Source: Oculina patagonica
Taxonomy: Eukaryota
Direction of reading: 5' to 3'
Length of the DNA stretch: 64,000 bases
Assembly: GCF_052425735.1 (NCBI RefSeq)
Contig: NC_135770.1
Location: 22,010,001 to 22,074,000 of the forward strand
Part shown: piece after piece, positions 36,006 to 61,800 of the stretch
How positions within the stretch are numbered: position 1 is the stretch's first letter
Layout of the letters: each line of letters starts with the position of its first letter
Program-made: the position numbers and the translations under genes
The notes under the pieces: generated by a model
Databases searched by the model: none
What the model saw: the letters and a program-made list of their open reading frames with translations, nothing else
Told to the model about the DNA's origin: nothing

Positions 36006-37815
36006 TCATTCCACCAAGATATATCCCGTGGCTTTGATGTGTTTGTTGCCATTATCTGCTAGGTGCGTTGCTTGGTTTCCACACGTGTTGGAGTCATCGT
36101 GTAGGCCTCCTGTGCCAAAGCCGATTCTGGAATCACAGCTGCGGCAGTCATTTTGCTCGTTACCAAGGATACCGATTCTTGCTTTCGAATTTGAAGAATT
36201 ACCCACAGAATTGAACCCTTCTTTGTTACAGTTGCGCTGTAAGGAGGCCTGAGAACCAATCAGCGTCTTCCACTTGTTACGACCCAGTGAGGTGGCGCGG
36301 TATTGCCCGTCAGCGATCAGTGAGTACAGAGAGCTGGCCTGCTTGTTGATGACAATGAAGTTGATCTGCTGGACGATCTTCATGCCTAGACAAATCTTGG
36401 AGAAGGGTGTGTTCCAGTAGCTCGGTAACTTGGTCTCTTGAGCGTCAAACCCAGTCTCCCCTCCTTGAAGATTGTATTCATTGTTATCGCTCCAGTACCC
36501 CGAGTTATAATGAAAGGTGTTCTGAAAAAAGGAAAAGTTCACTTCATATCTAGAATTATGAACGGACGCCTTCATGGTCATCTTATTTCAGAAATCAGGA
36601 TTCTGCGCCATTAGCAGGGCTGACCAGTAAATCTTATACCTTGTTTCCGTCAATCTTCATGACCGGCGTCCATCCCCCATCTCCACATCCAAAATCTCCA
36701 AAGTGACAGAGAATGGAAGTTCGTTTTGAGTCAAAATGGAGCGTAACCAGCTGGCTCAAGTTTGACCTGTTAATATAAGGAGATAAAGAATACGCCGCAA
36801 TAAATTGTAAAGAATTTAGTAATACTAGATCAAGAAGTCTATATACATCTCTTGAAATTGGTCTTGTGCTGACAGATTCTACAGTAGGCTATTTATGGAC
36901 GATTTTTTTTCGAGAACAACATAGACGGCGGAGCAGAAGGGCAGGGGGGGGGGGGGGGTCTGTAGCCTCCCAAACAACATTTTGGGGGGCTCAGCCTCCC
37001 CCCTCCACATTTCAGTGCCGAAAGTATTGATAGCGCAACAGAAAATTGGTTTGTCAAATGACAAATCGTTTTATCAGGATCGTGCTTGGCGTGATAATAT
37101 GGTGTAGGACTTTCAACAAAACTCCTTTCCCCAAGACGCTACTAGGGGAGGTCCGCAATCTGTTAAGATTGTATTTGACATTATTTTTTTCATCAGCCAC
37201 TTTTAGAGCATACATTTTCTGCCCTCCGACGTCTATAGAACAACCCAAAAAGCACCCTGAAGCAGGATTGTCTGAACTGCCTAGTTATGGATTGTCATTC
37301 AAAGGCTTCAAAACCGCGCAGCTCGTACCCTAATGTCTGCGAGCTATGATAGTAATTTAGATTATTTGTTGCGGACACTGGGGTGGCGAAGACTCTATTA
37401 TCAAAGATTGGAACACAAGTCTATCCTAATGTATAAAACATTACATGGTATGACTCCTGATTATCTGAGATCAAGATTCGTATATCGTGACGATGTTAGT
37501 GCTTATCGTTTAAGGAATACCGAAAACAAATTAGTTCTTCCACAACCTCGAACTGATTATCTCAAGAAAAGTTTTTCGTACAGCGGAGCTCAGTTTTGGA
37601 ACAATATACCTATAGACCTAAGAGAAGCATCTTCACTGGCCAAATTCAAATCTAAATTAAGTCGGCACAGTTTAAAGTAATATCTAAATTTTAAGTAAAT
37701 TTTAGACACGGCCTCCATGAAAAGCAGACTTTTCTTTTGTTATTTGAATTTGTTGTTATTAAATTTTTGTAGTTAGTTAGATAGGTAGATAGTCCAGTAA
37801 CTTAATTGACTGATA

Positions 37816-37847
<32 letters not shown>

Positions 37848-40800
37848 TTATCTTATCTTAATTTGGGACACACCGGACACTGTTAAAGACATTTTGGGAG
37901 GGGGGGGGGGGGGGCGCTTGGCTTGGAGAACGGTGCCCCCCCCCCCACGTTTAAAAACGCTCCGCCGCCTCTGAACTTGAAACCAATTCAGAAACCAATC
38001 GTGTTGAAGCGTTTCACCATGTGCGTTATAAAAGCTTAGTATAAATTGTTTAAATTTAATAAGGTTCTTAGCGTAAGCGCTACTGCAGAAGAAATTACTG
38101 TTGTTTGTTGATCACCATAAGGCCATCCCAATAAAATTGTTTTGTTTCCCATCACCTCTGACCAACCCTTTTTTTCGAAAAGTTTAAAAAAAATCCAAAA
38201 TCACTATTCAAAGGAGCAAGTACTCAGTTTAATTTACAAGCACACAATCTTGTTTTATTGTTGCATGTTATTAACCCGCATTTGACAGAAGTGAAACGAA
38301 GAAGTCAGTTGGCCCCCATGAAAATGTTTGGTACGCCTCGGGTAAAAATGGTACGCGTACCGTAAAAAGTGGTTCGGCACGGATAAATTTTGTCGTGTGA
38401 ACGACCTTGCCTCACCCGTCGGCCAAACCAAAATTTTACCCGTGTTCGGACCTAGTCGCGAGGTATTCCGAGCACGGATAAAATTGGTACGCGTTCCTAA
38501 AAATCTAACCCGGCTCGAATAAAATGTGTAGTGTAAACGATTAGCCGTGCTGAACCAACTATTTTCTTCTGAAACTTTGTTCAATAAGTTTTGCAAAAAT
38601 TTCACTCGATCGACATGGCGGAGTGTTAGACATGCATGTATTTTAATTACATGTAAGAAAAACAGTTGCCAAGAAAATCTCATGAACATTCATGGAAGAA
38701 CTAGCGTGACTTTCAGCAACCTTCTTTGGTCGCTTTCTCATGATTTCGTGATCATTAGTGTCCAGAGTCGCAAGCTGAAATTCTGCCTTGGAAGAACATG
38801 ATGTAAGGAGTTGCTACAAACATGCGAGGAGAATATAATAATAATACAAATAAATAATCGCCGTCGTTAATAGGGGAGGTAAAAGCCATCACTGCTGTCA
38901 TTTACTGCCGCCATTTGAACAATAATCATATACCTACACCCTTTTCTAGTCTTCTGGGAACAAGGCGAAAAGATGCGCGACTCAAGTGTGACGTTTAAAT
39001 GAAATAGCGGCATGCGAACTAAGACCGAATCGCGTACGCTGGCCAAGGTTTTGAGCCTTTTACCCGCACCAAAACATTATTTAACAAAGTTTAGCACGGT
39101 AGAAAAAAGGACGTGTAAACAGGGTATCAGTGCTATTTTTTGGTACGGGTAGCAATTTTATCCGAGCCGTGCCAAAATTTTTCTGCCGTGTAAATGGGGC
39201 TCAAATGTCTAGTTAATGCAAGTTTTCTAGTTTTTAGTGGAAGTAATCATCTGTTTCCTGACATTTAGCTTTCTGCATTTCGTTTCAAGCTATCACCCGG
39301 TTTTCATTCCTTTTTCATCAAATAACTCTGGAAACTGAAGTCAAAGTCCGAAGCGATGTACGGGGCGAGCGCTGTGTTTGAACATTGTGCTCAAAATGCC
39401 GCCGTCAAGAAGCCATGCAAGTGCAGCGCGCTCGGCCAATAAGAAACGAGGATTTTTTCTTCTCATCCAATCAGTATCATTTAATTTTGCATAAGAAAAA
39501 ATGCCCTCTGTCACAGCCAATCAGAACTCAGCAATTTTGCCCTCTATGTTATATTACAGCATACCGAGAAGTTCCATTGCCCGATTATAATAATTTTACT
39601 TTTAAGAGTATCAACCGAATGGTGCATTGGTTTGATAGTGAGATTTTAATTTGCCTTACTTGAATACTTCATACAGTTCCTTGCACGACTTCACGGCTGA
39701 AAGAGATAAAAACAAATTAGCATTTATATAGTAAGGGACTGTGCAAGGGGGCAGTAAAGCGACAGGGGTAGCACAGTGTAAACTCACAGCCTTAGAGAGG
39801 GGGTAACATGTAAATTTCTGGGAAAAGTGGGGGGGGGGGGGGGGGGCAACTGAAAAACTGACTTTAAGATTCGAATACCAAAGATATTTCACTAGACACT
39901 CATTACTATCCGGGCTGATTTAATATGAAAAAAACATGGCTTATATTACATCAAAAATAAAATAGAAAATACAGTCAGTATCTCATTCAGTGGAAGAAGG
40001 CACCTGCTAGAAAGCGAAGCAAGATGTACCGGAATGCTTTGTTTTTGAAGCTTCAAAAGAAAACTATTCCACACTGCGTCCATTATCGCACCACAATAAG
40101 ATTGGGGATAAATTTGGCTCTCGTTCCTTATAGTGTCACTCAGTTTGTTCTCGTCGACCAGGTTAACGATGGACTCCTCCCCTATACTAACCACTTCCCA
40201 TTAAAGGAGACCATCGTTAGATTCTCCAAGAAGTCAGCCCCCAAACCAAGTCATAACTCCCCAAAACTAAACCGAAACCCAGCTTTCCAAGTCTGGTAAA
40301 GGGATTATTCGCCTAACCACACAGACGCTCTTGTTCGTAAGATCTCTTCCTGGGGATGATTGCAGGGAATGCACACACAAACCGTTTCAGCTGGTTTAAT
40401 ATCCTGCCATGAACAGGACGGTTCCGTACCGATGTTTGAGGCCAGTCGAGCAGAGGCTCCCACCGGATTTAAGACTTTCGCTAACTGCATGTAGTATAGG
40501 GCTGTGTGACGCCTAGTCCAACCGACATGATCCATGATCTCGGCCAGATCCGCACCTGTAAGAGCTAAAGTGATCGTACAGCCAGAGCGGAAACCATGGA
40601 GCGTCTCGCCGTTATCTGCATTCATCTCCTTAAGGTAACCCTTTAAGCGTGATTCCGCTGCAGAAGAAGTAAAAGGGGCGTCTTTTATGCCCAAATCAGG
40701 TGTGATTGGACGAAATAGGTCTTAAACCACACGTTAAATTCACCTATATATCACGCATCACCTCCATATAACACTCGATGCCTCGAACAAGACAGATCTC

Positions 40801-43800
40801 AGTTTGCGCATTTCTCCTCACTTCAAACACGTTCTCGTTCCCATCCCTTAACGTCTTTCCCCAAATATGATTGAAAAGGAAACCGTCGTCGTTGGGGAAA
40901 TGTAGGACCTTAATCTGTCCCAAGCCCCCAGGTCGATCTCCGCTAACGAAAAATTGTTTAAAATACGCCTGATCGCGGGATATCATAAATCTGTCAATCG
41001 CTCTGCCTGAGTCTCCCAATTTTCTGTCTAGGTGTGAACATAATTGTGTTAGCTTATCAACGAAGAAAGGGGTGGCCTGCTTTGGTCTTACCCGAGCCTG
41101 TAATTGTTCCGCGGTCACCAGCCTCAAAAAATCTTTCACCGACTTGTCAGATGCTGGGTTTCCTAGGCCTAGACGCTTGTCCAACTCGCCGTCTCGTCCA
41201 ATAGAATGGTGAATAGGTCGTAGCTTCCCGATATAAGAGTCCACCGTCTTATATGATAGACGTACAAGACATCCACACGTATATCGTCCCGCTTGGCCGA
41301 TGTACTTACAGCCATTGCGGTGAACCTGAGTTTTCCCATTCTTGTCTTGAAAAACAAGGAACCGGCAAATATCCCGTGGAAACACAGTGGCTAATGTGAT
41401 ATGGCCAGGAAGGAAAACAAGAAATGTTTTAAACTCCTTTCTTAGCGAGTCCTTCTGTTTAGCATAGCTGGTAGCACGATCAATGTCCATTAGTTGACGT
41501 AAGCGCTGGTCAATGCTCTCCAGATCGATGTCAGTCTTGCCAATATTAACCGGTGTCACTATTTTTCGGTTATAACCACAACGTTAGCAGAATCTAAAAT
41601 CCTGGTCATTCGCATGGGAGCATACTGGACATCTAACAGAAGGTGTAAACAACTTGGCAACGATGGCGAGATCCTAAGTAGAGAAAGGACGAGAGACTTG
41701 TAATCTTCCAAAACACTCTTTATTCTCCTTAAATGTCAAACTTCGTATTTGCGTACCACAGGATTTTACAAAGAAGGGGGGAAAATTTCTTGTTCTGACT
41801 AAGGGATCCCCACATTCCAGGGGGTTTATTTAATTTCAATTTAATATATTGCTAGTGTTCCTGAAAAATTGTCACTGACACAGACAAGCTCAGAGCTCCA
41901 ATGGATAAACTATCTGGAAGGCCCACAAGTCCCCTGGGATCCCGCTTTCTCCGCTCCAACCTTCCTTTGAGAGTAGTAACAAGGCTTGAGAATCACCTGC
42001 ACCTGCCAGCTTCTGCGCTTTCCTAGAAAACCGTTGTAAAAGAGGCCACCAGTACTTTCTCGGGTATGTATCCAGGACCACAACTGTGCATGATTGCCTA
42101 TAAGACTGGAGGAAGCGCAAACTGAGCCGACTAGAACATTGGCGGGAAAACATACGGACGCTGCATCACTGTCGAAAACTGAGTCAAATATAGCGCTAAC
42201 AAGTTCACCCCTATCGAACCAGGCGAAGGATATGGCGTGAAATGGGAGAGAGGACGCCCCAGCCTATCAGACATGGCGTTGGAATCGAGGGCCATCAGGT
42301 CACACGAGTGGCCTTGTCCACCCCCCAAAACTCAGTTGTACTTCATTCCAGATCTCCGATGTGAGTGTATAGTCCAAAGAAGATAATCTGCGAGAAGGGG
42401 CGTCCGCCGGATTTTCTTGAGACGGAACGTACAACATGTGTTGAAGGATGTTCAGATCCATAGTGGTAAAGAACAAAGCCTTTATAGTATTGTTCAAGTC
42501 ACGACCTTTACCTCCTTAATTATTCCATGCATACATGACCGCCAGATTGTCAATCATTACATCGACGCGACAATCCTTGACAAGGTCCTTAAAGGCCTTA
42601 TCCACAGCAATGGCCTCGCTAGTCGAAACGACCAACATCATCTCATCCTTTGACCAAAAATCAGATGTTTTCTGCTTCAAAGGTGTGGAAATGACCCCTC
42701 CCCATCGAGTTTGGGAGGCTTCCGTAGCTAACTCAATCTGAAGATGTCTCTCTCCACGCCAAGGAAGGAAGTCGTCCCACTCTTCTAGAAAAAGCCAATG
42801 GGCAATTTCATCGCGCAGAGCACCCTGGACCACGATTGGTTCCAACGTGCGCATACCCATCTCCCTGGTGAACAGACGGGCAGCTGGAACCCCAAGGGAA
42901 AAGGAGACGCATTTACCCACCAATCTCTGGAGCGTCTTGACCGATACATAAAACACACAAAATAGAAGAACTTTCTGAAGAACTAAAGTTGCTGAACAAA
43001 CAAAATGACACATATGCTCAACAACTTCGATTTTTCTCTCAAAATAAAGACAGCTGTACCTTTTCATATGCAAGCCTGAAGAAAAATGAGATGAGATTTG
43101 AATATATGACTGGACTGTCTTTACGTGACTTTGATTGCTTATTTGAATGTATTGAGCCCTATTTAACAGCTATTATTTATCCTGACTGTAAAGCTCACCA
43201 CAGTGCTCAAAGAAAGCTGTCAAAGAAAACTGAACTCATGTGTTTTCTAACCATTTGTAGACACACCCTGCATCTTGGTATAATGGCATTTATAACCAAC
43301 ACAAGTGAAGCAACACAATCCAGAATATTTACTGGCTGGGCAGTTTTTCTAGCTACACTTTTTGACCAGATAGATCTTGGTCCTTGTCGTGGTGAGGTTG
43401 CTTCACTGCTGCCAAGTGATTTCTGGTCATCAGGCTTTCAGGACACAGTCTTATTGTTAGATTGCACTGAAAACTGGATTGCGTCACCTGGAAACTATGA
43501 TGTTAGCAGTGCCACATTTAACTCCTACAAAAATCATGACACCGGAAAAACCGGCATTTGGATCACCCCATATGGAGGCCTTGTGATGTGCACAGATACT
43601 TACCCTGGAGCCATAACTGACAACGAATTAACTTCGGACTCTGGTGTTCTGGATATGATCAAAGAAAAAGGCACCACTGTTTTAACTGACAAAGGATTTG
43701 GCATAGAGGATTTGTGTCTTTCGAAAGGCCTTCTACACAATAGACCACCTCTCAAATATGATTCCCAGTACGAAGAAGCAAGAACTTTGATATAGCCACT

Positions 43801-46800
43801 TTACGTATCTACAATGAGAACTATATTGGACGTATGAGGGACTGGTCGATCCTAAGCGCCTGCTGGCCAAAAAGCAGATGCGATATTCTGCGCTTTGTTT
43901 ACAAGATTTTTACTAATATTGTCAACCTACTTTTTAAGCCAATAGGTCCAAAAGAGGCAGCAACTGCACTGAAGAAATCAAATGATTTGAGCGCCCTTTT
44001 CCACTGGCAAAAACACCACCCCACCATTGTCATTTTTTATTTGATCTTGGCAACTCATTTCACAGTGCATAACATTTGATCTCTGATTTAACATTGTACC
44101 TATGTTAGTAAATATAATGGGCTGATAAGCCATGATTCAAATTTGTGACATTACGTAATGTATGCTTGATGTAATGATTTTCAAAACTTGGTGGATTTGA
44201 TTGATTTTGCAACAGAGTTTACCCAGCATGTGAAATTTCTGATATTTTCAAATGTTGGTCCAGAACCTGATAATTGCTCTACTAATTTGACAAGCCTAGA
44301 ATCTTCAAGGTATGCCCAGTGATCTGGCATTGGCTTGTTTTCATAGATATGTAACAATAAACTTATCATAATATCAGAGAAGATATAATTTCTTGAAATA
44401 GGAAAATAATTTGCTGCTCCACATTCAGGTACATAGGACATCAAGTACACTAAGCTTGTGTCAGTACATTCCATCTGCATATGACATTGGACTAGGTGGC
44501 TGCCAGTTACCTGTAGGAAACAAACATTATAGTCTTAATATGGCATTATGTTTAAAATGAGCATTGTAGATTTTAACATGAAAAAGTGACCTTACTAGTA
44601 TTTTTGGAGAAAAAAAATCAGCTCAAGTGAACTCATGCCTAATAATTCAACTAAGTTGAAAACAACAACAACAAACATCCAAAAATGATTTAATTGACTT
44701 TCATTTGAATGTAGATGAAATATTTCCAGTCATGTGTTAGTGTAAATGATTTTTTTTAAAGCAGGGAAAATAATCAAATCATTTCGGTTATCATTGATTC
44801 AGTGACTTCCTATCAGTTTGTTCTCTTACTTGTTGCAATGGAGTTTGGAAAGCTTACACTTTAACCTTCTTTTCCTCCTCGTTCATTTTTTCCATCTGTT
44901 TCTCATTGGGCATGGAGCGGGCTTTTATTTCAAGTAGCTGGTACTGTTGATGTCCACAGACTATTCCATCAGGACTAGCACCAAATCTGTTGTCTGATGG
45001 ATGTCTGAAGTATCCACACTCGACTGTTTCAAGTTTTTTTAAATAGTTTATTGCAAACAAAAAAAGAAAAAAAAAAAAGAAAAAACAGCTACATACATGT
45101 ACAATGTGTCTGAGCTTTAAATACAATACGGTACTTATCTACAGTACTTATGTATAATGCTTGCTCATGTTAATTCTTTATCAGCTAAAATTCCTGTCCT
45201 TTCAAACATTACGTTATTTACAGATGCAAAAGCTATACATTTCAGACGAATAAGTATACAAAACAGAAAAAGCGAGGTAAACAAAAAAACTTCGTGACGA
45301 GTACAAAGACTAATTACGGACAAAAGGAAGCAGAAAAAAAAAGAAATAATAAAATAAAATAAATAGATAAAATAAATAGATAAAATAAATAGATAAAATA
45401 AAGTGCCTTACGAAATTTCACCTAAAAAAAGACTTAGAGTTGAATTTGAGACTTTGAACTACTTTTTTCGATAGATATTTTATCTTTTAGAACGGCTAGG
45501 AAGGTTTCGAAGTGGTAGTTTTGTTCATCTCTCGAGGCAGTGTAGATATAATATTTAGCAATGAGTACACAGAGGTTTAAGCCAAGTCGTAAAGGAAAGT
45601 TAGTTGTAAAACCATAGATAATGTTTTTCTCGTGTAGCTCAATGGAATCGTCATGTTTGACGTTTCACCACGTAGCAAACGTATTCCAGAAAGTCTGTAC
45701 ATTCGGACAAGAGACAAAAAGATGTCTCAGGGTTTGCGTTTGCGTGCATAGGTGGCATTTATCATGGTCCTTGATTTTATCTCTGTAAAGGGTTGAATTG
45801 GTTGGTAAAATATGGTGAATAATTTTGAATTGGAAGATAGCAAGTCGAGTGTCTTTTGTTACTTTAAAAGGAATATCGTAGATAGCGCGTATTGTGCTAT
45901 CGTCCAGACTCAATTGCCTCATTCTTCTTTCTGCGGTCGGAGTTTCAAAGTTTTTGTTTATAAGAATTTTGTTTCAAAGTTAGTGTCATTACAAAACTGA
46001 GTTAGTGCATTTTTTCCTGTTGTTTACCTCTAATGAAATTGGGCAGTTTAGCACGTTTGGGATTCAATTTACTCTCATCAATTTTGTTCTTAATGGCCAA
46101 CCAGGCACTGTCAAATTCTTTTGCTCCACAAAACCCAAGTAAGGCAGGTGCTTTGCTTGCAGCTATTACACCCACCCTGAGTCCCCTCCAATGTTCACTG
46201 CATTCCTCAACTGATACATAATTCTTTCTCTGGAGCAATGGCACTTTTTGGCCTGTCATTGCTGGCTGATTGTCAACCGTGTCAGGATTACTGCTGTTGC
46301 AGCTACTTGAGTTTTTTTCAGTTACTGCATTCACTGGTTTACATACTGCTTCGGTTTTATTGGTGAACCTTGGTTTTAGAATATCAACATTATATTCCTG
46401 GTTTGCTTCTCGTTTGTCATACTCCTGTTTATATTGCAGGTGCAAGAATAGGCCAGATTTATTTTCGTACTTTGCAAAATACAGAAAAAAAAAGTGACTT
46501 CCAGGAGAAGGGGATATTGTTTTCAACTTTGCTTCCACTTTCTCTTCCATTTCTACCACATCCCTCTGATACCAGTCACTGTAATCACTTCCTTCATTAG
46601 CTGAGAAAACTTTTTTTCTTTTTTATTACATTCTTCATATCTGCTCTTGCTCCTCTAAGATTCCTTAGATATTTCAATTTTATTTGTGTTGCAGCAATTT
46701 TAGCTTTTGTCGTTCCCTTCCTGTGCCACACCTGAAAGTTTTGTGTACATGTCATATGGAGATGTAGCCTCCCACGCAGTCGTTCTTAGGGGCGATCGCG

Positions 46801-49800
46801 TTTCACTCTTTCCTACAGCACAACCGCAATAAGCTTTCACGGGAGTGTTGTCAACGAACAACATTGTAACGGGACGTGACACACTGCCAGTGAAAGATTT
46901 CAGTATATTTGCTTTAATATACAACGATCGAGGCTCTTCTTGAAAAACTTTCACTGACATAGTTCGCCTGGACGAAAACATTCTGTAGGCTTTCCTGTAC
47001 TGGCCTTTCCCTCCGGCGAATTTGCCTGTTTGATAGCATTTTTAAATAATGCTGTCATCGACTGTTGGTATATTTATATCTAAATCAAGTGGAAGAATTT
47101 TCCATTTGGCGGTGGCTGGAGGAACCTCTGACGGCGCCATTAATGTCTTAAAGCTGTACTCTTCATTTATAATTTTTACTTTTTTTGTTAATAAGTCAGG
47201 AAATTCGCCGAGTGGCCTTAACCTTTCGATCAGTTCTTTTTTGTCTCCACCGATCTTTAGCCTCAGCTCTTTACAACACTCTGTGAGATGTTCTTTACTG
47301 AGTTCTTCTAAATTTTGAATATCCTTTCTGATATGGTCGAATTTATCGCACGAATCCGGCGAAGGTTTAATGTCTTTACTGTCCGCCATCTTTGATCCGG
47401 ATTTTCAAATTGTCCGCAAAAATCCGCTAGTCTCAGTCTCCCGCGCGACATGAAATTAGGCAATGAAAGCATCGAACTCAAACTTACGGGCCGCGCGCGT
47501 TTGTGGGATACGGCATTAAAATGTTTCTCCCCAGTCCCTCAATATGACGTCACAGATCACCTGGCAAGTACTACGTGGACGATCACCTGGCTAGCGGCAT
47601 GGTTTGCGGGCGCGTGCGCCCTAGCGACGGCGACGTCGCCCAAACATGGCGGCCGTAGTCCAGAAAAAAAAAAAAAATTAGCTAAGCTGGGCAACTCGCC
47701 CTGGGTAACGTTCGTTCCACATTGGGATGAGCTTCCTCGATCAGATTCTGCGACAGTTGACAGACTTTCGCCGGGGGGATGAGAAATTAAACCGTGTTTT
47801 GCTCAAGATTTGCCATCAACGGCTTTCTACGGAGCTGGATATTTATAATTAATGAGCTTAATCACCTTGTTTAATACGAAAAAACTGGCAGCCGTTTCGT
47901 CTCTAATCATGTCTTATTTATATTGAGCTTTGCCCTGCAAGCGTTCTTTAAATACGAGGTAAGTCTAAATATATTTAAAATCTTTTTATGTAGGTTTAGC
48001 TAGTCGTTTAGGTTATACATTTAAGATCGAAATTTAAAGAGTGAAAAACAGCCCCCCCCCCCCCCCACCACCGACTGTCGGTCAACTGTTGGCCGACAGA
48101 TACCGACAGCCTCAAGCCACCTACAGTTCCCCCAAAATAATAGGGCAATAAACCTGATACAGACCGTTAAAATATTTAAAACAATTAGACGAAATAACAA
48201 AGTCGATTTTATTTTGCATTATAATCACTTACCTTTGAACGCTAAGCCATACAAAGACAAAAATAAACACAGAATAGCTTAGAAAAAAACAGATCCACTA
48301 ACGTAAAAAAATCGTAAACATATATCTTATATTTAAGATAAAATGTTTCATTTTAAACTTTTGGCTGAACTTTGCGTTTTATTTATTTAGTTTTTAATTT
48401 ATTTCTTATTTTAGTGGAGTTTGAACTGTGGCATTTGTTTGATTATAATGGGCAAATGATACCCTTTCAGGTCCCTCACAACTGAGAAGTGCTCTTATAC
48501 ATGTAAAACATGGATAACAAAGGGTGTTATGATTAAGGGAGTTTTTAGGATAAAAGTGGAAAGTGACTATGCATAAGTGATGCTGGATTGACATGGGAAT
48601 TTCTTGCTTTGCTGCCATCCAAATGCTATTTGGATGCTACTGAGATACACTGTGCATCAATCTCCCAGTATAAATAGCTAACATTCATTACACGGTATGT
48701 TTAAATGAAAAAGGGAGTTTTTTATGTTATTCATAGCCGGTGTTCAGTGGGATGTTCAAGGAAGAAGAAAGAACTACAAACATGTCTTCTGTCAGCGTAT
48801 CGGCTGTACATATAATATACATGTTCTGGATTACAATTGATCCTGGTAGGTGTTACGATCAACGTAAAGACGCCGAGGCCATGCAAACACAACAACTTTT
48901 AATGGCTGACGAACAAGACCACGCGAGACACGAGGCGCGGTTACATAACAATCTTAGTTACGTGCAAAACTTAAATATGCAAACTTATTCAATATCACAA
49001 CATCTTCCCCTTTGTAAAGAAAGTGTCTTTCACAAAGTTCTCGCACAAAAAGCGACTAAGTTCCTTAGTAATAAAAACAACAACAGTGTACATGTTCAAC
49101 AATGAATCAGAGTTCCAAATAAAAATGTCTAACAGGTCTAAGTAGTAAAGTCCTGAAAACGGGCTGGTGGTTTCACAATACGACCACTCCTTGTAACAGT
49201 CGGATTGGATGCAAGTTCCACATGCTCTGCTGCAGGTTTCACAACAGATGGGGAATCTGCTTGTGGCAATGATCGCAGTGGCTCAAATGCTGGTTGCACA
49301 ATAGTTGGAGAATCTGATTGTGGCACTGATCGCAGCTGTCGGCGATTTCGCCTGTACGTTTGGCCACCCGATACAACAACATAGGAACGTGGGCCAATCA
49401 TTTTCTTGCAAACAGCTTCTGTCCAAGTAGATTCTTTGGGCTTCTTCATCCTGACTGTCTGTCCAGGTTGCAACTCAGGCAATGCTTTTCCTTTCAGGTT
49501 GTAGTAGAAAGCCTGCTTCTGTTTAGAGTTAATCAGCTTTTCTTGGACAGCTTGTGAGGGAAGTGTGTTAGGCTGTAGTTGTTTACTTGGCAGGGGTAAC
49601 AAATTGCGTGTTCTTCTGCTGAACAGCCTTTGTGCTGGGGATGAACCAATTTCTGTGGATGTGTTGCGGTAGTCTAGAAGAGCAAGGTACGGGTCAAACT
49701 TTCCACACGCTGCCTTCTTCATTAGGTTTTCACAGATTTTCCCAGCACTCTCGACCTTTCCATTACTTTGGGGATAGCGCGGAGAGGATGTGATGTGTTG

Positions 49801-52800
49801 AAAGTGCCAGTCATTTGCAAACTTTGCAAACTCAGCAGAAGAATGCTGTGGTCCGTTGTCGGAGATTACAACCTCCGGAATTCCATGACGACTAAAATGC
49901 ATTTTCAACTTCGCAATAACTGTCCTGGAGTCTGTCATGTCAAGCTTGTCAACCTCGAAGAAAGAGGAGTAATAATTAACTGTAATCAGGTACTGACGCC
50001 CATCAAAGAAGAACATATCTGTGCCAACTTTTTGCCAAGGCCTTGATGGAATTTCATGGGGCATTAGTGGTTCTCGAGGCTGCTCTGGCTTTAAGGAATT
50101 GCAAATATCACACTTGAGAATGAAGTCTTGCAACTCAGCATTCATACGCGGCCAGTAAAACACCTCTCTAGCTCGTCTAAGACATCCTTCGATACCGAGA
50201 TGAGACGAATGAACCATTTCCATCATTTCCTTTCTTAGCTTGGCAGGTACAATAAGACGCTCAGCCTTGAACAGCAAACCATTTTGAGCTGTGATTTCAT
50301 CTCGAAACTGAAAATATGGCTTGGCCTCTGCTGGAACTTCATTGGGAGTGCTAGGACAACCTTCTAGGACAACTGACATAAGGGTTTGAAGGTTTTCATC
50401 TGAGGCTGTGCCTTCTTTGAATTCCTTTAGTCGTGCTTCTGAAATGGGAAGATCCTCTGTAAGTACTATCGCCTCTAACTCACTACAGTACTCGGTCTGA
50501 GTGGGAGGTTCATCCAGATAGGCTCGGGACAGGGGATCTGACATAACCATCGAGCTTCCTTTTTGGTACTTTACATCAAGGTTGTATCGCTGTAGGCGCA
50601 GCAGCATCCGCTGGAGACGCTTGGGAGCAGAGCTAAGGTCCTTCTTCAAAATAGCTTCTAGGGGCTGATGATCTGTTTTAACGTGTACCACATCTCGACC
50701 AAACAGGTACGTATCAAATCGCTCACAGGAAAACACGACTGAGAGAAGCTCCTTTTCAATCTGCGCTAACGACCTTCTGCTGGAGTAAGGGCTCTAGAGG
50801 CAAATGGAACTGGCTGACCCTCCTGAAGTAGGGAGGCGCCAAGTCCAGAAAGTGATGCGTCACTTTCGATTGTGACTTCCTGATTGACATCGTAAAACTT
50901 CAACACTGGAGCTTTACAAACAAAATTCTTGATACTCTGGACAGCTTCATCATGAACAGGCAGCCAACACCATTCAGTATTCTTAAGCTCCAGTCGTCTC
51001 AATGGCTCGCAGACACTGGACAGGTTTGGTAAGAACTTAGCCAGGTAAGTAACCATGCCAAGGAATCGCTTCAGGGATTTGACATCTGTCGGGGTTGGCA
51101 TGTCACGTATGGCACGAACTTTGTTTGGGTCGGTTACCACACCATCAGCTGTGAGTAGATGACCCATGAATGGTACTTGTGATAGGCGAAGCTTAACCTT
51201 ATGAAGATTAAGTGTCAGATTCAACTCACGGCATCTTTGAAGGAAAGCCGTTAAGTTCTGATCATGATCCTTTACTGCTTCATCGACAGTGTCTCCAAAT
51301 CCACAAACCAGGAAATCATCGGCGATAACTTCCACTCCTTGGAGACCCTCAATTGCTTCATGCATCTTCCGCTGCCATATCTCGGGCGCAGAACTTATGC
51401 CAAATGGCATTCTCAGCCAACGAAAGCGGCCAAAGGGGGTGTTAAAAGTGGTGTAAAAGCTTGATTGCTCAGTTAGTTTCACTTGCCAAAATCCACTTTT
51501 CGCATCAAACACACTGAACACTTTGGCACTTGTGAGACGATTTGTGACATCTTCAACTGTCGGTAAAGGGTAACGAGAGCGCTTTATGGCAGTGTTCAAA
51601 TCTTTGGGATCTAGACAAATGCGGACCGATCCATCCTTCTTGGGGACTGCTAAGACACTCGACACCCAGTCAGTTGGCTCTGTAACTGGAGTAATAATCT
51701 CCTTGGCAACCATCTTGTCAAGCTCGGTCTTCATTGCCCTTTCTTAGGAACAGGCAATCCTCGTGGGGGGTGAACAACAGGGTGAACATCTTTACTCAGC
51801 TGGATGTTGTATTCCCCGGGTAAACAGCCAATGCCTTGGAACACATCAACAAAAGGACTAAGCACAGGATCATTGGTAACATCCTCAGAAACTGCTGGAT
51901 CTTGTTTTTGGGCTTCAACTACATTATTGATAGGGGTATCAACACCAGAGACCATAATCTTGATAAGACCCATCCCCTTTGATGACTGCAAACCAAGCAA
52001 AGGTGTGACCATCTGGTCGACAATGACAAAATTCAGTTCATGCTTACTACCATTATGTTCCACTTTCAACCTTGCAAAACCAAGTGCCTTTCGCTTCGAG
52101 AGATCATGCATAACCAGTGTAATGTCCTTGGGAACAATTTTAGCTTTGCTGTGATCGTTTGTTACCCTGATGTAATCCTGCAGTGGCAAAATATTTGCAG
52201 TAGAACCTGTATCAATTTGAAATGTCACTGATGCTGAATCATTGACAGTTAGTGAAACGAGAGCTTGATCTTGACCACTGATGCTATGAATGTAAAATCC
52301 TTCTTCGACCATGTGAACTTTCGCACCTTCTGAGTTGCCGTAACACTTGACTGCAAAATGACCTTGTTTACCACACTTTTAACATTTCTGACCAGAGGCC
52401 GGGCACAATTTCCTTTCCAGTGCATGTTTACCACCACAAAACAAACACTCTTTCAGCTTGGGAGGTCCCTTGTTTGGCGACGGAAGCTTGGGAGGCGGTG
52501 TTTTCCGGCGCTTGTTTTTAAACGGAGGTTTGTGACTCACTCGATTAATATCTTCGTGTCCTGAAGATTCTTCTGAAATTTCTGTTGCTCGCTCGTGAGT
52601 AACTTGACTTGCCTTGATAGTTTCGATGGCTTTATCGAGATCGAGGTCTCGCTTTCCGAGAAGCTTTTCACGAACTCTATCATCCTTCACACGAGAATTA
52701 AGCGGTCCCGAACCAGCGATTCTCGTAACGCGCCAAAACCACATGACTTCACATGACATGAGCTTCATCAATGCAGTTATGTAATTATCAAGCGACTCAC

Positions 52801-55800
52801 TGGACAATTGCTCACGTTTGAAGAAAACATATCTTTCATAGGTTTCGTTCCGTGCGGGGACACAACGCTCTTCGAACTTTTCAAGAACCTTATCGATCTT
52901 TAGAGCGTCCGAAGCATTAGCCCATTGGAAGGTGTCGTACATGTCCATTCCTTCTTTACCGATCACATTCAACAGCGAAGCCACCCGAACTTCTTCTGGT
53001 TTCTTGTGGATGCCAGCCGCTAGCTCGTAAAACTTCCATTCACGTCGAAACGATTTCCAATTTTCACCTTGATACAAACGGTCAGTAAGATTCAGCGGCG
53101 AGGGAATTTTCGCTGTAGTACTGACAGCAGCCATGATACTTGTAATGCCACGTGCAACGAACCAAAGCAAACTCGAACGCAAACTATAGACTTCACAACA
53201 GCCTACCAATCGCGGACGAAGCGCTGGACTTGACGACTTCGAAGCTACGAAGTTATTCTGAACAGTTGGGTTAAAATCCCGCGTCTGACACCATGTTACG
53301 ATCAACGTAAAGACGCCGAGGCCATGCAAACACAACAACTTTTAATGGCTGACGAACAAGATCACGCGAGACACGAGGCGCGGTTACATAACAATCTTAG
53401 TCACGTGCAAAACTTAAATATGCAAACTTATTCAATATCACAACAGTAGGCATTAACAAGTAACCATTAGATACTATACACAAAACCCACTGTGTTCATG
53501 TGTTTAGTGAGTGTCTGTTACTCTGCAGCTATTAATATGATATGCTTTGTTTGCTTTTGGTAAGTTTACAGTCACATTGATGCAACGATGCACCACCTTT
53601 ATTGAATGGGCTTGGAATTAAACTTTTAAAAGCCATCTATAACAATGTCTGGAAGCCGTAATAGCAATTATTGCAAAAACTAGTTTTCCCACTGTTTTTA
53701 GCACCTCTTCAATCTAGCAATGCTCCTATTAAAGGGAATTTGCTCATTGGTTTTAATTTGGAGTTTGGAAAAAATAAATTATTTAGAAATCAAACAATGT
53801 ACTTTTTCTGGCTTTATATTAAGGGTCATTCAGTGAAAGTAAGTGCTGGCAACAAAATAATCACCGTTTTCCACAGTGAGTACTTCATTTCTACCCCCAT
53901 GGATGTTTCAATAGCATGGTGATGAATTGGTGTTGTTATTCCTTGATAGTTTATAAGGCTGCACAAATGACACCAGAGTTCATACACATGCTAATGTATT
54001 GGCAATACATTTTACAAGCTGTGGACTCTATAAATTTAAAACAGTTGTGTTGGTGGTGCTGTGAAAATAATAATTGCTGTATTCATGTAAATAGTATAGA
54101 GTAAAGAATCCTTAGAGTGTGTTCCAAAAAGTACACTAACGTTTAAGTAAGAGTCCATTTGCACCTGTAAATGGAAGTTTAGAAAATACAGTAAAAAACC
54201 TGCGATTAAAAACCTTATTTTTAAGAACCTGTTGGGCTAAAATTTGCCTGTTGGACGCCCCCTATATAAGAACCTCTTTAGCCTTAAATTTAGAAAAATG
54301 TTCTCATTTTCTAAAATCGATTAGAAATGTTTACCTTTAGGGAAATAAGATACGTCAATTGCATTTTGGCTTTTCTTTGGAGATGCCCAGGAGCCTTATA
54401 ATTCCAGCCGCAATGTTAATGAAAATGTTGAAAATCATAAAATATTGTTATTGATATAATGACATAAACATAAATAAAATAGTTTGCAAATTTCATATAA
54501 AGAAAAGGCTGAAGAGTACTAAAAGTGTAAATTTTTCTTCAGAAAATAAGAACCTATTAAGAACCTAAAATGCTTAAATTTGTGCTAATTACCATTTATG
54601 GTACCATTTACCATTTACCTTGTAAAATGTGAGTTTTTACTTGCAGGTTCTTACTGTAGTTATATTTGATTATAGCATTTTGTTTAACTAAACAAGAAAA
54701 AGGTAAAAGAAAACAAGACATGGTTATGGAGCTCTTAACTGACTTAGATTGTATTCCTTTCACTCAACATTTCAGTTGTTGATCTAAAGGCCTGATCTAC
54801 AGAATGTTTACTGACAAGAAAGCTCTTGGTTTCATATGATAGCATGGGAGGCACGGTGGCTTAATGGTTTGCACTGGACTCTGGATCGAGTGGTCTGAGT
54901 TCGAGCCCTGGCCAGGCACTGTGTTGTTTAATTGGGGAAGGCATTTTGCTTTCTCAAAGTGCCTCTCTCCACCCAGGTGTTTAAATCCCATGATGGACAA
55001 GCATCCCATATAGGGGTAATAGAAATACTCCTAGTTGCTTCAAGCTACTGAAACCGGGATAATCACCGTTCTGATAGGCCGTTATTGCCTTAATTCCTAT
55101 AATGGTACCATACTATACTTAATCACTAATTTATGTACAATTTATCCGGGCCAGTAATATGGGCTGATGAATAAAGTTTAAAAGTTAAGAAGCTCACAAA
55201 TGGTTGATATGCAAATGAGTGAGTATTTTTCTTCAAACAGTACAGTCTATCGTAATTATGCGACAGGTAATGACCAGGGTCCCAAAGGGGTTTAGGGCTT
55301 CAGGGCGCCGGGCTTAAAATGCAGGGCTCCAGGGCTCCAAGAAGAAAATGTCAGGGCTCCAGGGCTCCATGTCATCTGCTTTCTTGCCCCGGGCTCCACT
55401 ACTGGTCTACAATCTTGATATATAAAAATTATTTCGCTAAAGCAAGCCCGCAAATTAAAACGTCCACAATTCCGACCAGTTTTTTAAACCCAAGAGGCCT
55501 AAACATAATGCATGATTTCTAATTTTTTCACCCCTTTTTGAAGTCACGACTGTATAAAGTATGCCTTCTGTTTATGTACAGACTGCAGGCTAAAAGAGCT
55601 TAAGTGCTGTCGGTCAATTATTTCCTTTTTGATTGATCCCCTAACTGATTTTTTTTGTTTTGCTATTGTTTCTGTTTAGTCAACATAAGGAATAAAATAA
55701 ACATAAGAAAAGAACTTGGGAGCTCCGCTATTACGCTTGGCTAAATCTATTTAATGTATAATGTGTTTAGAATCCCTTGTTACCGTGGGTTTTGTCAAAG

Positions 55801-58800
55801 ACTTGGTGGTTAAGGCAAATAAGTCGCTTATTCCTCTTCGTCCCTGGTGGGACATAAGGCGCCAACGATCTGCTTCCATCGGGACCGATCTTTTGCCACA
55901 AGTTGTGCCTCACCCCAAGTCAAGCCCATTTCCTTTAGGGACAGACCATTAGAAAAGTGATGGGGGGGGGGGGGGGGATGGGGAAAATACAAAAAAATAA
56001 TTCATGCAAGGGAAAGTGCCAAGGAAAAAAAATCGTGCAAAGGGGAAGGCAAAAAAAAAAAAAAATCATGCAGAAGAACGTTACTATTAAGCACTTAAAC
56101 CATTTGTCATTTTACACTTCATGAGATGATCAACGTTTTCGACGACATATATCAGGGAGAATGCTGAAAATAGCGTTTCCGAGCCTAGAAATTTCAAACT
56201 TTTCTGGGGGAGCATGCCCCCAGACCCCCCTACAGTCTAGTGTCTCCAGTGCTTAACTTCTAGTTTCATAAAAGTAAAGTACATCCAGCCTGGCCTTTCG
56301 ACAAGCAAAACGTGTCTTCCCTTACGCCGGTGGTTATAGAAATTCACTTTCAAGTCTTGCCTTCTGGCTATTGTATAAAAACTTTGACACCAACATTAGT
56401 AAGACAATCGATATAAATTGCTGTTGACAAGTGCATAGGATGAAAAAAAGAATCAGTATAACATGGTATAAAATAACAGTACATGGCATTCGATTTTAGC
56501 CATTCTTGATATTTTTTAAAAATAATATAATGATCAAAGATGGTCTTTAAGGGACTGTTCAAAAAGTAAGGGGGGTGGTGGGCCGGAGTAGAAAGGGGGT
56601 GGGTCATATAGTTCTTAGTTTTGATCTGCACATAGGGGGTTGGACTTTAAACTGTTACAGTTACAAGAAAATCCCCAGTGGTATTCATCAGTATTAATTG
56701 ATAAATTTCTTGACACGAGCAGTTTTAGATGTATTTCTAGTGATTTCAGAAGGCCCGAATATAAAAATTTCCTGGGGGAGCTTGGATCCCCGGACCACCC
56801 TAGATGGCTTGTGATCATAACATCGGTTTTGGTGAACTCTCTCCAGCCGCCACTTTTCCAATTGCTCCAACCCACCCCCAGTGCGTATTGACCAGTTCCT
56901 AAAGGATTAAATCAATGAATAACAACATTTTTCAATACATAGAATCCGGTCTAAAGAAAACGTTTTGTCCAAAAAAAGAACATGTCAAAAAAAAAAAAAA
57001 AAAATTCGAGCAGAGGGTTTCACCTGCAAAAAAAAATTCCTGCACAAGCAATGGGCGTAAAACAAAATTCGTGCAAGCCGAAAATCCCCCACCCCTCTAT
57101 CACTTTTCTAATGCTCCGTCCCTTAGCTCGGCCATCACACTACGTCTCCAGTTTGCCTTGTGCCATCCTCGCCTCCTTTTTCCAGGTGGTGTCCATCTAA
57201 GGGCGGTCTTGGGGATACGGTCTTGGTCCATTCTGAGGACATGCCCAAGTTAACGCAACCGGCGGCGTTTGATCTCAAGTACCACACTCTGACTCTTTGT
57301 TTTCTTGTAGAGTTCTTCATTCGAGATCACGTTGGGCCAGAAAATGCGGCATATCCTCCTAGGGCAGCCATTGTGGAAGGCTAGGCAAATAGGTGTTTGT
57401 AAGTGAGCACCTAAAAACACTGTTTACGGAACTAAGCAGAATTTCACTTAGCAGTGTAGAGAAGTATTGCTCCCGCCATAACAAACACTACAGAAACAAG
57501 AACCTCCCAGATGACGTTGTTGGCGATATTTTGTCGACTGCCGTGAAAGAGGACGGTGCATTGTTTGACTTTGTATCGTTTATTGGATAAAACAAGAACA
57601 GCTGTATATGTTTTGTTTTCAACTGAATACATGTAAACTAAATAGACTGCAAAACAGTCGTTTTTTCTCTAAAAGAAATAGCGTCTCTCCCCAGTCTCAC
57701 TCACAGTTTTGACATTGGCTCCAGACCTCTCGCTCTCATTCGAAGACCGAGCGCGTTCGCAAAAGATACGACTGTTTTGCAGTCTATAACCTAAATCACT
57801 TAGCCGTGGAGTGCGTTATAATGAAGATCTCTATCCAGTAACGCAATTGTAACCGGTGGTGTTGTTGGGTGTTTCTCTTTAAAGGCAATACGCCAGAACT
57901 GTGAACAGTCCTTCCTTTTGCAAACGCTAGTATTGAAGTAAGTGTAATGAATGATGATATTTCCAAACAGAAACAAAAGCACGAAAACAACACCGACTAC
58001 GATGCATTACCGGATAAAGATCACTCCACGGCTGATCGATTGAGATTATTCAGTAACAAAACATAAATAGCTGTTCTGCTTTTTATCAAGTAAACAATAC
58101 AAAGTCAAACTACACACCGTCCTCCTTCAATGGAAGGCAGTCGACAAAATATCGTCCACAACTTCATCTGGGATGTTTTTGTTTCTGTAGTGTTTGTTAT
58201 GGCGGGAGCAACAGTAGGTAAGTGGGGAGCCCGCCGGCCCGATTATCCAGATCCTGAAATAAAAGGGAGGCCAGCTGTCGAAAATATTTTTTTTGGCCCT
58301 TCGGGCCTCAGTTTTGCCTAAAATTAGGGTGAGGGCCTGGTCCCCCCCGGGCTCCACCCCTAGATCCGCCACTGAGCAATACAATTACAAATTATACAAT
58401 TTAAAGCGGCACACAGGACACCATCGCTAGAGAGCCCCTACACAAACTACCAGTCAGGTGATCATGGCATGGTGTATCTTGGTTGCTATTACTTCCGTAT
58501 TCAATTGAATTCAACTTACATTGGCTAACAAAACTTCAGTTTATTTTTTCCATTTTTTTGATTTTACTCAAAAATGGAAAAAATAGCAAATTTAACAGAA
58601 TATACTTAATTTTCGATTTTTCCCTTTTTGGAATAAAAATGGGAAATAGAAAAAATAGAAAATTACACCATGAATATTCCATTTTATCACTTAGCTCAAA
58701 ATAACGGAAAACGAACAATGACAAAAAATCAGGTTTTCAAAGTCAACAGTATTTATATTTTTTTTGGAGTCAACTTCAAATTAGAAAAATGAAAAAAATA

Positions 58801-61800
58801 CTCTCATTTATTCTTTTTGCTGACGATACTAACATATTCTTCTCAGACAGCAATATTCATGCATTGACAAAAAATATAAATGAAAAACTTGAGAACGTTT
58901 CCAATTGGTTAAAAGGTAACAAACTCAACCTCGTTCCCAGGGCTTTTCCCTTGGTAATTTGGATGTAACAAACTATCCTTCATTATTAAAAAGACTCAGT
59001 TAGTGATATTCAAATCAAAAAACAAAAAACTTAAACAAAAAGTCAATATTAGATTAGTTGACTCAGATATTAGACAGGTAGAATCAGCCAGATTTCTAGG
59101 AGTACGTATAGATGGAAATCTTGACTGGAAGCATCAAGTAAGTCACACTTGCAACAAAATTGCCAAAACAATTGGTATATTATGCAGAGCAAGAAATTAT
59201 TTACCTCGTGTTGTTATGCGTAGTTTATATTATGTATTGATTTATCCATATCTAAGTTATGGTGACATCGCGTGGGGAAATACATACTCAGCAAGATTAC
59301 AACCAATAAGAAGATTACATAAGAAAATTAAAAGGATAACAACTTTTTCAAATTTTACAGACCATACCAGTCCTCTTTTTAAAGAATTATCAATTTTACC
59401 CCATTGCTTTGTTTTATGTTTAGGCCATTGCTTTGTTCATGTTTCGTTACTTTAATATTTTGCTACCATGCAATATATTTCCATAATTTCTTTCAAGTAA
59501 ACAAGGACATTCACAAATACAACACACAATCATTCTCCAACATTCACAAAATCCAAGCGCTGACTACCAAATACAGTCAGTACGGAATAATCTCCCAACA
59601 TCTCAAAGAAATTAAAACAACTACCTTATTCAGGAAAAAGATTAAACACATCTTCTTCTCAAACAGACAAACGAAGATTTTTAGTCAGTATCGCTTAATA
59701 AAATAAAATAATCATCATACTATATGCTTTATACTGTAACCTCCATGTCACAGCCATGTATATTTAATTTGTTACAATTGTAACCTTGTCCTGGGGCTCT
59801 CCTCGTAAAGCCCTCAAGGGCTTGCTGAGAACTCCTGCCCAGGTATATTTTTATTTTATGACAATTCTTGTAATCCACATAAAAGGGCAAATAAATGATT
59901 GATTGATTGATTGAACAACCGAATACACTAGAATTACCGATAAGCTTAACAACAACTAACAAACTGACTAAAGCACGAACAATGAATGAGTGGGGAAAAC
60001 CGAAAATAGGCAAGAAAGAAAGACAAATAAAGGGTTGCGACAAAAATAAACATATTCTACCTCAAACTCTCCGTGTTGAGATTGTCCCTCAGCTTGTTGA
60101 GGTACTTGTGCCGCGGCAGGTTGAATTTCCTGAGCCACGTGCTCGGCCGCCGGTAAAGCCTTCTGTCCGACAACTTGCTGAACTACTTGACCACCGGCCG
60201 CTTGAGCTCCATGAGCTGCTAGTTCGTCAGCTGGCTGAATTCCTTGGGAAACCGGTAGAGCGGCTTGAGCCGGAGCTCCTTGTCCCGCAGGATACTGTAC
60301 GTTCACCGTTAAATAAGAAAAGGTAACACGAGGAACGGAAAAGCGATCCACAGCGTACGGCAGTTGTTCATGTGCACTAATCTTATATATGTCGCTTTAA
60401 TGTGTGCAGTGTGAATAGCTAAAGGGAGATCATATACTACTTAGAGTATCTGAAGTTTGCTTTGCAAACAGAAAGATTGGTCAGCAGGAGTTCCTGGGAA
60501 TTGTTTTCCTGTTCCGGGTCTCAGTGACACCAGATACATTCCAAGCACAAGTGACCAAATCAACAAGCATCTCCCGAGCATACAAGTAAAGCAATTGTTT
60601 GCCTCTGGTCAACTAACTTCAAACGGTAACGAACTCCAAAAGGTGTGCCAGGAATTAATGGTTGACGAGAATGCCTGAAAAAGCTTTGTAGAACATCAGG
60701 AATTTCTCGCTATAAAGTCACCAAAGGGAGCTTCTGCAAGACACTGAAGAAACACTCTGGCAAACATTGACTGGAACAATGGGGACCATGTCAGTTCGCT
60801 GACGCACACAAGTTAAGATTGTACTTGAAGAAACACAATTTACAGGTCAGTGGGGGGAAAGCAACGCTAGTAGCTCGTGTTCTACGTTACGTTCGGACTG
60901 TTCAACAAATACTGGAACCCGAAGACAATGACGCAACTAGTGACTATGAGCTGCAATCTAGTGACTCAGAAGATCCAGATGACTTAGGAGACAATGTACA
61001 GTCAGACTCTTCAGAAATGGGCGACTTTATCGAACACAGTTATAAGGTACTCTTTGTCTCAGACATTGATTTCGAATGCGTTACAGTATAATGCAAGTAA
61101 AGGATTCAGGTATATTTACTATATTTGTAGGTGGTTGTTGGCAAGCAGGAGGGGGGGGGGGGAGATCGTCATAGTTTTTGGGAGATTTGAAGCGGGGTCA
61201 GAGCTAATTTGCCTTTGTTAAGAGGGGGTATTGTGTAATATTTCTCCTTGAGAGGCTCATTTTTCGGCCACTCCCTTGATAATAACTGCACAGTCCCTAA
61301 ACAGCGCTCTTGTGGTGGCTCTGAAACCGCTCCGTATAATGTTTTTTTTTTTTTTTGCAAAAAGTTGCATTGTACTTGCTGATCATACTCAATTATAAAA
61401 ATTGGGGTCACGTACCTCGTTTTTGAGTTAAAAGGCCTTAAAAATTAAGGGTGTTTTAACAGGTTATACTGTTGCTATGGTGACAAGTGACGTCATGAAA
61501 ATGATCACAACTTGTTCAGCAGTGATTGGACATTTGTTGATTTTGTTATTGTAATTTGTAGTACTGGCCCATCAAATTAAAAGAGCTGGAAAGTGCTGGA
61601 AACCGTTGTGAGCCTCCTTATGAAAACACTCTATTGCCCTTTTTGGGTACTACGGCCGTATTATCAAAGTACACTTTTTACTGTAACTTAGATTGCTGCA
61701 CACAGCAGAGAGAAGAAGTTAAGGAAACTGAACTTAGCAGTTTTGCCATATTGCAGTTGTCTACAGTTAAAATTGCAAAAGTTTGTAATAATGACAACCA

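Follow-up and report, generated by a model that had tools for sequence, protein, structure and literature searches.

The coral Oculina patagonica carries, within a 64,000-nt stretch of contig NC_135770.1 (NCBI RefSeq assembly GCF_052425735.1, positions 22,010,001 to 22,074,000 of the forward strand), a 21.6-kb block of DNA that is bounded by one pair of short inverted termini and lies between exons of a gene. Here 'window' refers to this whole stretch, and positions are counted from its first letter. The block raises the question of whether it moved as one giant transposon or accumulated within a smaller one. An initial annotation, made from the letters of the window, had offered two readings, a giant cargo-carrying Harbinger-like element or a small element that became a landing pad. 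The landing pad stood, with a backbone of 1.2 kb, and the giant did not, as its interior is found in no other copy. Thus, the 21.6 kb are very probably a nest grown in a small Harbinger-type landing pad rather than a giant transposon. The outer boundaries of the block, the family memberships of its components and the order of their nesting are shown below.

Boundaries of the insertion and its empty site

The left boundary reads TAA then GGGACTGTGCA (39732-39745), and the right boundary reads TGCACAGTCCC then TAA (61287-61300). With perfect 11-bp termini and a TAA read at both ends, the proposed 21.6-kb insertion bounded by terminal inverted repeats (TIRs) and TAA is confirmed. The target-site duplications (TSDs) are located as follows.

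39732-39734, strand not applicable: left TSD of the outer element, TAA
61298-61300, strand not applicable: right TSD of the outer element, TAA

Compared with a paralogous gene copy in the same window, the insertion spans 39735-61297 (21,563 bp), with the TAA duplication at both flanks. When 39133-39734 was joined to 61301-61900, a single colinear alignment at 77-78% with 3374-4160 crossed the join uninterrupted, bearing out the earlier excision test, in which removal of the interval left sequence that matches the paralogous site. ATAGTAAACAGCGC across the join corresponds to ATAGTTAACAGCGC at the empty paralogous site; likewise, ATAGTAAACAGC across the join corresponds to ATAGTTAACAGC at 3545 in the paralogue. 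The 15-mer that follows the right TAA has a single other occurrence, at 3550 in the paralogous gene copy (0 expected by chance). Here 'empty site' refers to a paralogous gene copy, not an allele. Because the alignment is colinear through the join, with TAA on each side, 39735-61297 is an insertion relative to the paralogue.

Read support was checked using contigs only, over one 2.6-kb stretch. Three data sets contain error-free or near error-free contigs that span 60418/60419, an inner junction of the block; the first is probably the source sample, the second a metagenome from coral, and the third a run that bears another organism label. For the outer right junction, 61297/61298, one spanning contig was seen. 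Neither a loose end at 61297/61298 nor an empty allele was seen among the matches listed, which is a weak test as it covers contigs only. Because contigs bridge 60418/60419, the nest, or at least its second layer, is neither an assembly artefact nor private to one sample.

The outer family and the break in its window copy

The window's own genome (529 Mb) was searched with 200 bp from each end of the insertion, and the best 40 candidates per query were scored. Both outer ends occur together, in the same orientation, at 12 or more other loci. Matching TAA or TTA duplications flank 10 of the 11 other copies with both ends readable, the remaining copy having TAA/TTA. The family TIR is ~25 bp long (GGGACTGTGCAATAATTATCRGGAG) and is present in all fetched copies. 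Its first 20 bp give 59 forward and 58 reverse matches at two mismatches or fewer, against 2 for the control. From these 117 termini, the outer family therefore has ~60 copies in the genome.

A genome-wide search of the termini had been proposed as a check on the annotation. The ends do pair elsewhere with TAA/TTA duplications, as one family, and the earlier assignment of the ends to PIF/Harbinger is supported by TWA duplications and shared TIRs at 11 or more other loci, at spacings of 0.36-8.8 kb. Because no autonomous partner was found, the superfamily is assigned from TSD and TIR only, and on these criteria the family is classed as PIF/Harbinger-type and non-autonomous. No DDE_Tnp_4 (PF13359) match lies between any listed TIR pair, with the best 150 of 518 candidates scored. 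The larger copies L042-L045 are without transposase and contain other inserts, a long terminal repeat (LTR) element in L044, or zero open reading frames (ORFs).

From one paired terminus to the other, the copies measure 0.36, 0.87, 0.96, ~1.0-1.9, 3.1, 3.2, 5.3, 7.0 and 8.8 kb; most are 0.36-1.9 kb, and the 21.6-kb copy in the window is the largest. Only 12 nt of the left TIR remain in the window copy (39735-39746), 13 bp of the ~25 bp being deleted internally. Because of this 13-bp deletion in its left end, the TIR of the window copy is perfect for just 11 bp. The backbone of the window copy amounts to ~1.2 kb (39735-40059 plus 60419-61297), in two arms.

39735-40059, + strand: left arm of the outer element, 325 bp; 81-92% to the left arms of L042-L053; contains a poly-G tract
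60419-61297, + strand: right arm of the outer element, 879 bp; contains a SAP ORF relic, a poly-G tract and the right TIR (61273-61297)

When 12 fetched copies were compared with the interval by BLAST, only 39735-40059 and 60419/60571-61297 were matched. The interiors of the 3.2-8.8 kb family copies among them have no match to the interior of the block. The annotation had suggested looking for interior sequence that accompanies the termini elsewhere; none is shared by other terminus-bearing copies.

The two arms join at one point. In an uninterrupted copy, L046, AGCTTCAAAAG is directly joined to CTAAAGGAAGATCAT. In the window, AGCTTCAAAAG ends at 40059 and CTAAAGGGAGATCAT begins at 60419; removing 40060-60418 rejoins the backbone as CTTCAAAAG directly followed by CTAAAGG, exactly as in L046. 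Because excision restores an L046-like backbone, the 20,359 bp of 40060-60418 came in at a single site and left no target duplication.

Both edges of this insert belong to a tyrosine-recombinase/ALOG element, described in the next section, which is the large unit that the annotation had missed. Matches of the recombinase family begin at 40055 and end at 60418-60423, and no genomic match runs on across either junction between backbone and recombinase element among the best 40 candidates per query. The loci with outer termini and the loci with the recombinase family show no coincidence. Because no match crosses a junction and the two sets of loci are separate, the composite is unique to this locus.

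The right arm contains the ORF relic with a SAP domain at 60771-61088 (PF02037, 25.2 bits against a cut-off of 23.9). The relic is kept across the outer family at 70-87% amino-acid identity, in the short copies only. Its longest open frame among the copies is 165 aa (C7:8062948), and a longer parent gene could not be detected in the genome. Variable poly-G tracts (G11-G30) are found near both ends of the family, in the window at 39830-39848 and 61150-61163. Two loaded copies, L042 and L043 (C1:10.873-10.879 Mb and 11.104-11.111 Mb; 5.3 and 7.0 kb), are 97-98% alike. Because their flanking sequence is common to both, they represent a segmental duplication ~230 kb apart, not two transpositions.

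Elements within the nest

The second layer is the recombinase element, whose two ends form the edges of the insert.

40060-42951, - strand: near end of the tyrosine-recombinase/ALOG element, 2.9 kb; at least 8 genomic copies of ~2.95 kb, 89-90%
59915-60418, - strand: far end of the tyrosine-recombinase/ALOG element; 76-77% match to 59922-60418/60423 at near-end loci

Eight other loci contain both ends on one strand, with a spacing of ~3.05 kb (2.9-3.1 kb) in 7 of them and of 6.7 kb in the eighth. Because the ends are linked at 8 loci, the edges of the 20.4-kb insert are the two ends of one ~6.9-kb element family. The termini are AAAACTATTCCACACTGC at the near end, which recurs elsewhere, and GCAGTGTGAATAG at the far end. 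When long inverted or direct terminal repeats were sought in the element, a 13-nt inverted match between these termini was all that was found. Integration occurred without a TSD, as zero duplicated bases are left when 40060-60418 is excised.

Two ORFs on the minus strand characterize the near end. The ORF at 40308-40721 matches Phage_integrase (PF00589, E = 1.8e-5) with 25.1 bits, below the cut-off of 27.1 bits, and its atlas neighbours are recombinases; the ORF at 40747-41583 matches ALOG (PF04852, E = 1.9e-18). Upstream of the recombinase, the atlas leads for a 217-aa ORF (42519-43169) are weak and RNase H-like. No Pfam reverse transcriptase (RT) match was found in the window copy outside the Gypsy element listed below. 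Judging from these domains, the element is probably a DIRS1-type retroposon, with a Crypton as the alternative. A Crypton lying at 32921-34800 was considered as a relative of the element and rejected, with zero blastn or tblastx match.

Homology to the recombinase family stops at 42951, adjoining the truncated end of a DDE_Tnp_4 relic. This adjacency suggests that a single deletion took away the recombinase-element middle together with the missing end of the relic.

Two other features of the family were observed. Matches of other copies extend 4-5 bp into both flanks (window 40055-40059 and 60419-60423), and AAA(A/C)AG precedes three other left termini (C6:7784655, C8:3006924 and C12:19514983). 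The flank extension may be a short homology core used at integration, or the terminus may be a few bp longer than drawn. Also, the first ~65 bp of the element, single in the window, are doubled in other copies (C1:11325718-11325782 and 7 sister loci), ~200 bp apart or ~267 bp from start to start.

Between the two ends of the recombinase element lie further elements, among them MITEs (miniature inverted-repeat transposable elements) and sequences resembling short and long interspersed nuclear elements (SINEs and LINEs).

42952-47465, + strand: dead, truncated DDE_Tnp_4 transposon of the PIF/Harbinger-ISL2EU kind; one TIR kept, left end missing
45034-45971, - strand: SINE-like retroposon, high-copy, 0.94 kb, nested in the DDE_Tnp_4 relic; many copies, 90-95%
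47587-48850, strand not applicable: unit U, left part, unclassified; colinear with C3:17724667-17727543, 76-90%
48851-53445, - strand: Ty3/Gypsy LTR retrotransposon nested in U; LTRs, TG..CA ends, GTAGG duplication
53446-55755, strand not applicable: unit U, right part; colinear with the C3 copy; internal high-copy repeats
55938-57122, strand not applicable: second, different PIF/Harbinger-type MITE, 1.19 kb, high-copy; TTA on each side
57467-58211, strand not applicable: palindromic MITE; perfect 30-bp TIRs (TTGCTCCCGCC...)
58796-59914, + strand: LINE-like 3' fragment, 5'-truncated; copies at 85-88%; (TGAT)n tail

These inner components have hallmarks of their own (LTRs, TSDs, TIRs) and independent copies elsewhere. 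The DDE_Tnp_4 relic retains residues 283-612 only of its transposase (43001-43992, + strand) and residues 1-566 of a frameshifted ORF1 (47455-44827, - strand). Its right TIR, ending at 47465 (…CATGAAATTAGGCAAT), bears no relation to that of the outer element. The closest relatives are a 4.7-kb family, L066-L068, at 65-72% DNA identity. The relic was considered as the source of the outer element's transposase and rejected; it is truncated, has its own unrelated TIR, and its relatives form a separate family.

The L066-L068 family itself (L066:3337-8042 at C11:16.02 Mb, and C6:35.37 and 25.93 Mb) was probably active recently because its copies are 98-99% identical. The copies contain convergent intact ORFs for a 623-aa transposase and a 603-aa ORF1, the latter with YqaJ-like nuclease, SAP and SWIM matches in place of the usual Myb-like Harbinger ORF1. 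Their flanks appear to be TA, not TWA, and are ISL2EU-like.

Two elements occupy a third level. The SINE-like insert, whose minus-strand tail is rich in A, shows the duplication GTTTCAAG / GTTTCAAAG, and related DDE_Tnp_4 copies are contiguous across its insertion point. The Gypsy element has LTRs of 152 nt with 2 mismatches (98.7% identity) and a 5-bp GTAGG on both sides; its domain order on the minus strand is RVT_1, RT_RNaseH, Integrase_H2C2, rve.

Unit U, which the Gypsy element interrupts, shows no TIR or TSD and no Pfam match in its left part. Its copy on C3 has no outer termini and unrelated flanks, and lacks ~440 bp of U (55211-55651). Because the colinear C3 copy has unrelated flanks, U is a unit of its own. 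For the same reason, the non-assigned DNA was rejected as a candidate for the recombinase-element middle. Between the DDE_Tnp_4 relic and U, short high-copy repeats occur at 47460-47567 (~105 bp, 92-97%) and 47588-47666 (79 bp, 89-92%); the latter, at the start of U, includes the GC-rich hairpin GGGCGC GT GCGCCC.

The MITE at 55938-57122 has 38-nt TIRs starting GGGACAGACC, and its family also bears poly-G tracts like those of the outer family. A reversed nesting is found at L047:385-2437 (C13:7.23 Mb), where an outer-family copy lies inside a MITE of this family. An ORF at 58705-58965, overlapping the start of the LINE-like fragment, has a weak RVT_1 match (Pfam E = 0.012).

Several kb had been left without assignment in the annotation and had been proposed, with the gene relics noted there, as a possible backbone of an undescribed large element. 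This idea did not hold: 47587-48850 and 53446-55755 are unit U, and 59922-60418 are the far end of the recombinase element. Among 20 further ORFs in the non-assigned parts, only the SAP relic passed the threshold in Pfam scans. Gene relics are thus not recognisable there by Pfam, and the sole conserved coding relic is the SAP ORF of the backbone.

The host gene, located on the minus strand, is one copy of a tandemly duplicated coral gene. On the minus strand, an EGF-like exon (~61.8-61.94 kb) and a PAN/apple-like exon (62721-63095) are still open, and a conserved exon is found at 36636-36772 with 93% conservation. Thus, a ~1.2-kb DNA transposon can enlarge a short non-coding stretch ~40-fold via chained nesting, with the checked flanking exons open. 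In the host intron to the right of the insertion, very high-copy short repeats occur at 61453-61626 and 61975-62148, where the summed contig word depth is 10,000-120,000 against ~35 for unique DNA.

Origin of the nest and comparison with known systems

The layers can be arranged into a very probable course of events. A ~1.2-kb non-autonomous PIF/Harbinger-type transposon would have inserted at a TAA between conserved exons of a gene copy. The tyrosine-recombinase/ALOG element would then have integrated between 40059 and 60419 with no target duplication, to be hit in turn by a DDE_Tnp_4 transposon, unit U, two MITEs and a LINE tail. At the third level, the SINE-like element would have entered the DDE_Tnp_4 copy and the Gypsy element would have entered U. 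One deletion or more would have removed most of the recombinase-element middle and one end of the DDE_Tnp_4 copy. We infer that growth took place in situ and that the composite is no longer able to move. Later movement as a unit is unlikely because the left TIR is damaged and there is no matching transposase.

Several points weigh against this course. As regards the central 100 bp, the single-point break depends chiefly on a single uninterrupted copy, L046. No counterpart of the recombinase family's ~3-kb middle can be recognised in the window copy, which calls for one or more deletions or rearrangements. Some 1.2 kb are without assignment (47466-47586, 55756-55934, 57126-57466 and 58212-58795). 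With the best 40 candidates scored per query, the absence claims are lower-bound statements. Growth in place as opposed to arrival partly built is not provable without an orthologous locus bearing the bare element.

If most or all of the 21.6 kb had moved as one unit by the outer TIRs, this would be a giant cargo-carrying Harbinger-like transposon. A single TIR pair and a single TAA duplication do bound the whole block, and many apparently intact DDE_Tnp_4 genes in the genome could act in trans. However, the interior sequence is in no other copy of the termini, no match elsewhere crosses the junctions between backbone and insert, and the interior components are all members of independent families that have ends or duplications of their own. 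The sole transposase inside is truncated (residues 283-612) with unrelated TIRs, and the left outer TIR is short of 13 of its ~25 bp. We regard the giant transposon as highly improbable. Just as improbable is that the composite can be mobilised, now or until recently, as a 21.6-kb unit by a trans-acting Harbinger transposase on the outer ends; if true, a coral would harbour a PIF/Harbinger derivative of very large size that carries cargo.

A partly pre-assembled composite, in which the 1.2-kb element already carried the recombinase element and maybe more on arrival and later layers were added in place, deserves somewhat more weight but is still unlikely. Loaded copies do occur, as there are 3-9 kb family copies with foreign inserts. 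On the other hand, the junction of backbone and recombinase element is found at no second locus, and the loaded pair L042/L043 shares its flanks, which indicates segmental duplication, not transposition. There is very little chance that the interval is a repeat mis-join rather than one real piece: error-free contigs bridge 60418/60419 in three data sets and one bridges 61297/61298, and the nesting is internally consistent with duplications intact at several levels, although the region is composed of repeats and the read check is confined to one 2.6-kb stretch.

A nest grown in a small landing pad thus remains our reading of the locus, and it bears on how such blocks are classified. A single TIR pair and a single duplication that enclose 21.6 kb are insufficient to define a giant transposon. 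A nest can be told from a giant by comparing terminus-bearing copies genome-wide, finding the true backbone and testing for a single-point break.

The outer family resembles Tourist-like or non-autonomous PIF/Harbinger elements in its TWA duplication, its ~25-bp TIRs starting with GGG, its many short transposase-less copies and its insertion in genic non-coding DNA. Unlike these, its backbone holds a conserved SAP-domain ORF relic, and no autonomous partner was found with these TIRs. Compared with classical MITEs, its copies are bigger and less uniform (0.36-1.9 kb), and their number is modest (~60). The CMITEs of Acropora (Wang et al. 2010, PMC2872659) are likewise MITE families of coral genomes, some of them intronic. 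They belong to the piggyBac type, measure ~100 bp, duplicate TTAA and have TIRs of the CCCTT type. The outer family is unrelated to them.

Iyer and Aravind (2012, PMC3537659) describe tyrosine recombinases with an N-terminal ALOG domain as proteins of DIRS1-type retroposons and report them, for the most part in degraded form, also from the coral Acropora and from Nematostella. The element in the window is like these in having the ALOG and then the recombinase domain at one end of a multi-kb element, and in having no target duplication (PMC3537659). However, the Ectocarpus DIRS1-type element has 159-bp direct repeats at its termini (PMC3537659), whereas the ends of the window element have a 13-nt inverted match. 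RT was not demonstrable in the window copy, which has weak RNase H-like leads. The case also shows, in this coral genome, an ALOG-bearing tyrosine-recombinase element family of at least 9 copies and an orphan Harbinger-type family with no autonomous partner visible.

In the intergenic retrotransposon nests of maize, later elements insert into earlier ones, intact duplications mark each level, and larger inserts make bigger targets. The layering and the intact duplications at each level are alike here. In contrast, the outermost layer in the window is a small DNA transposon between gene exons, and at least five transposon classes are packed into 21.6 kb. The biology of this case is that of ordinary nested transposons; its new family members are of known kinds, and the current understanding of transposons is unchanged by it.

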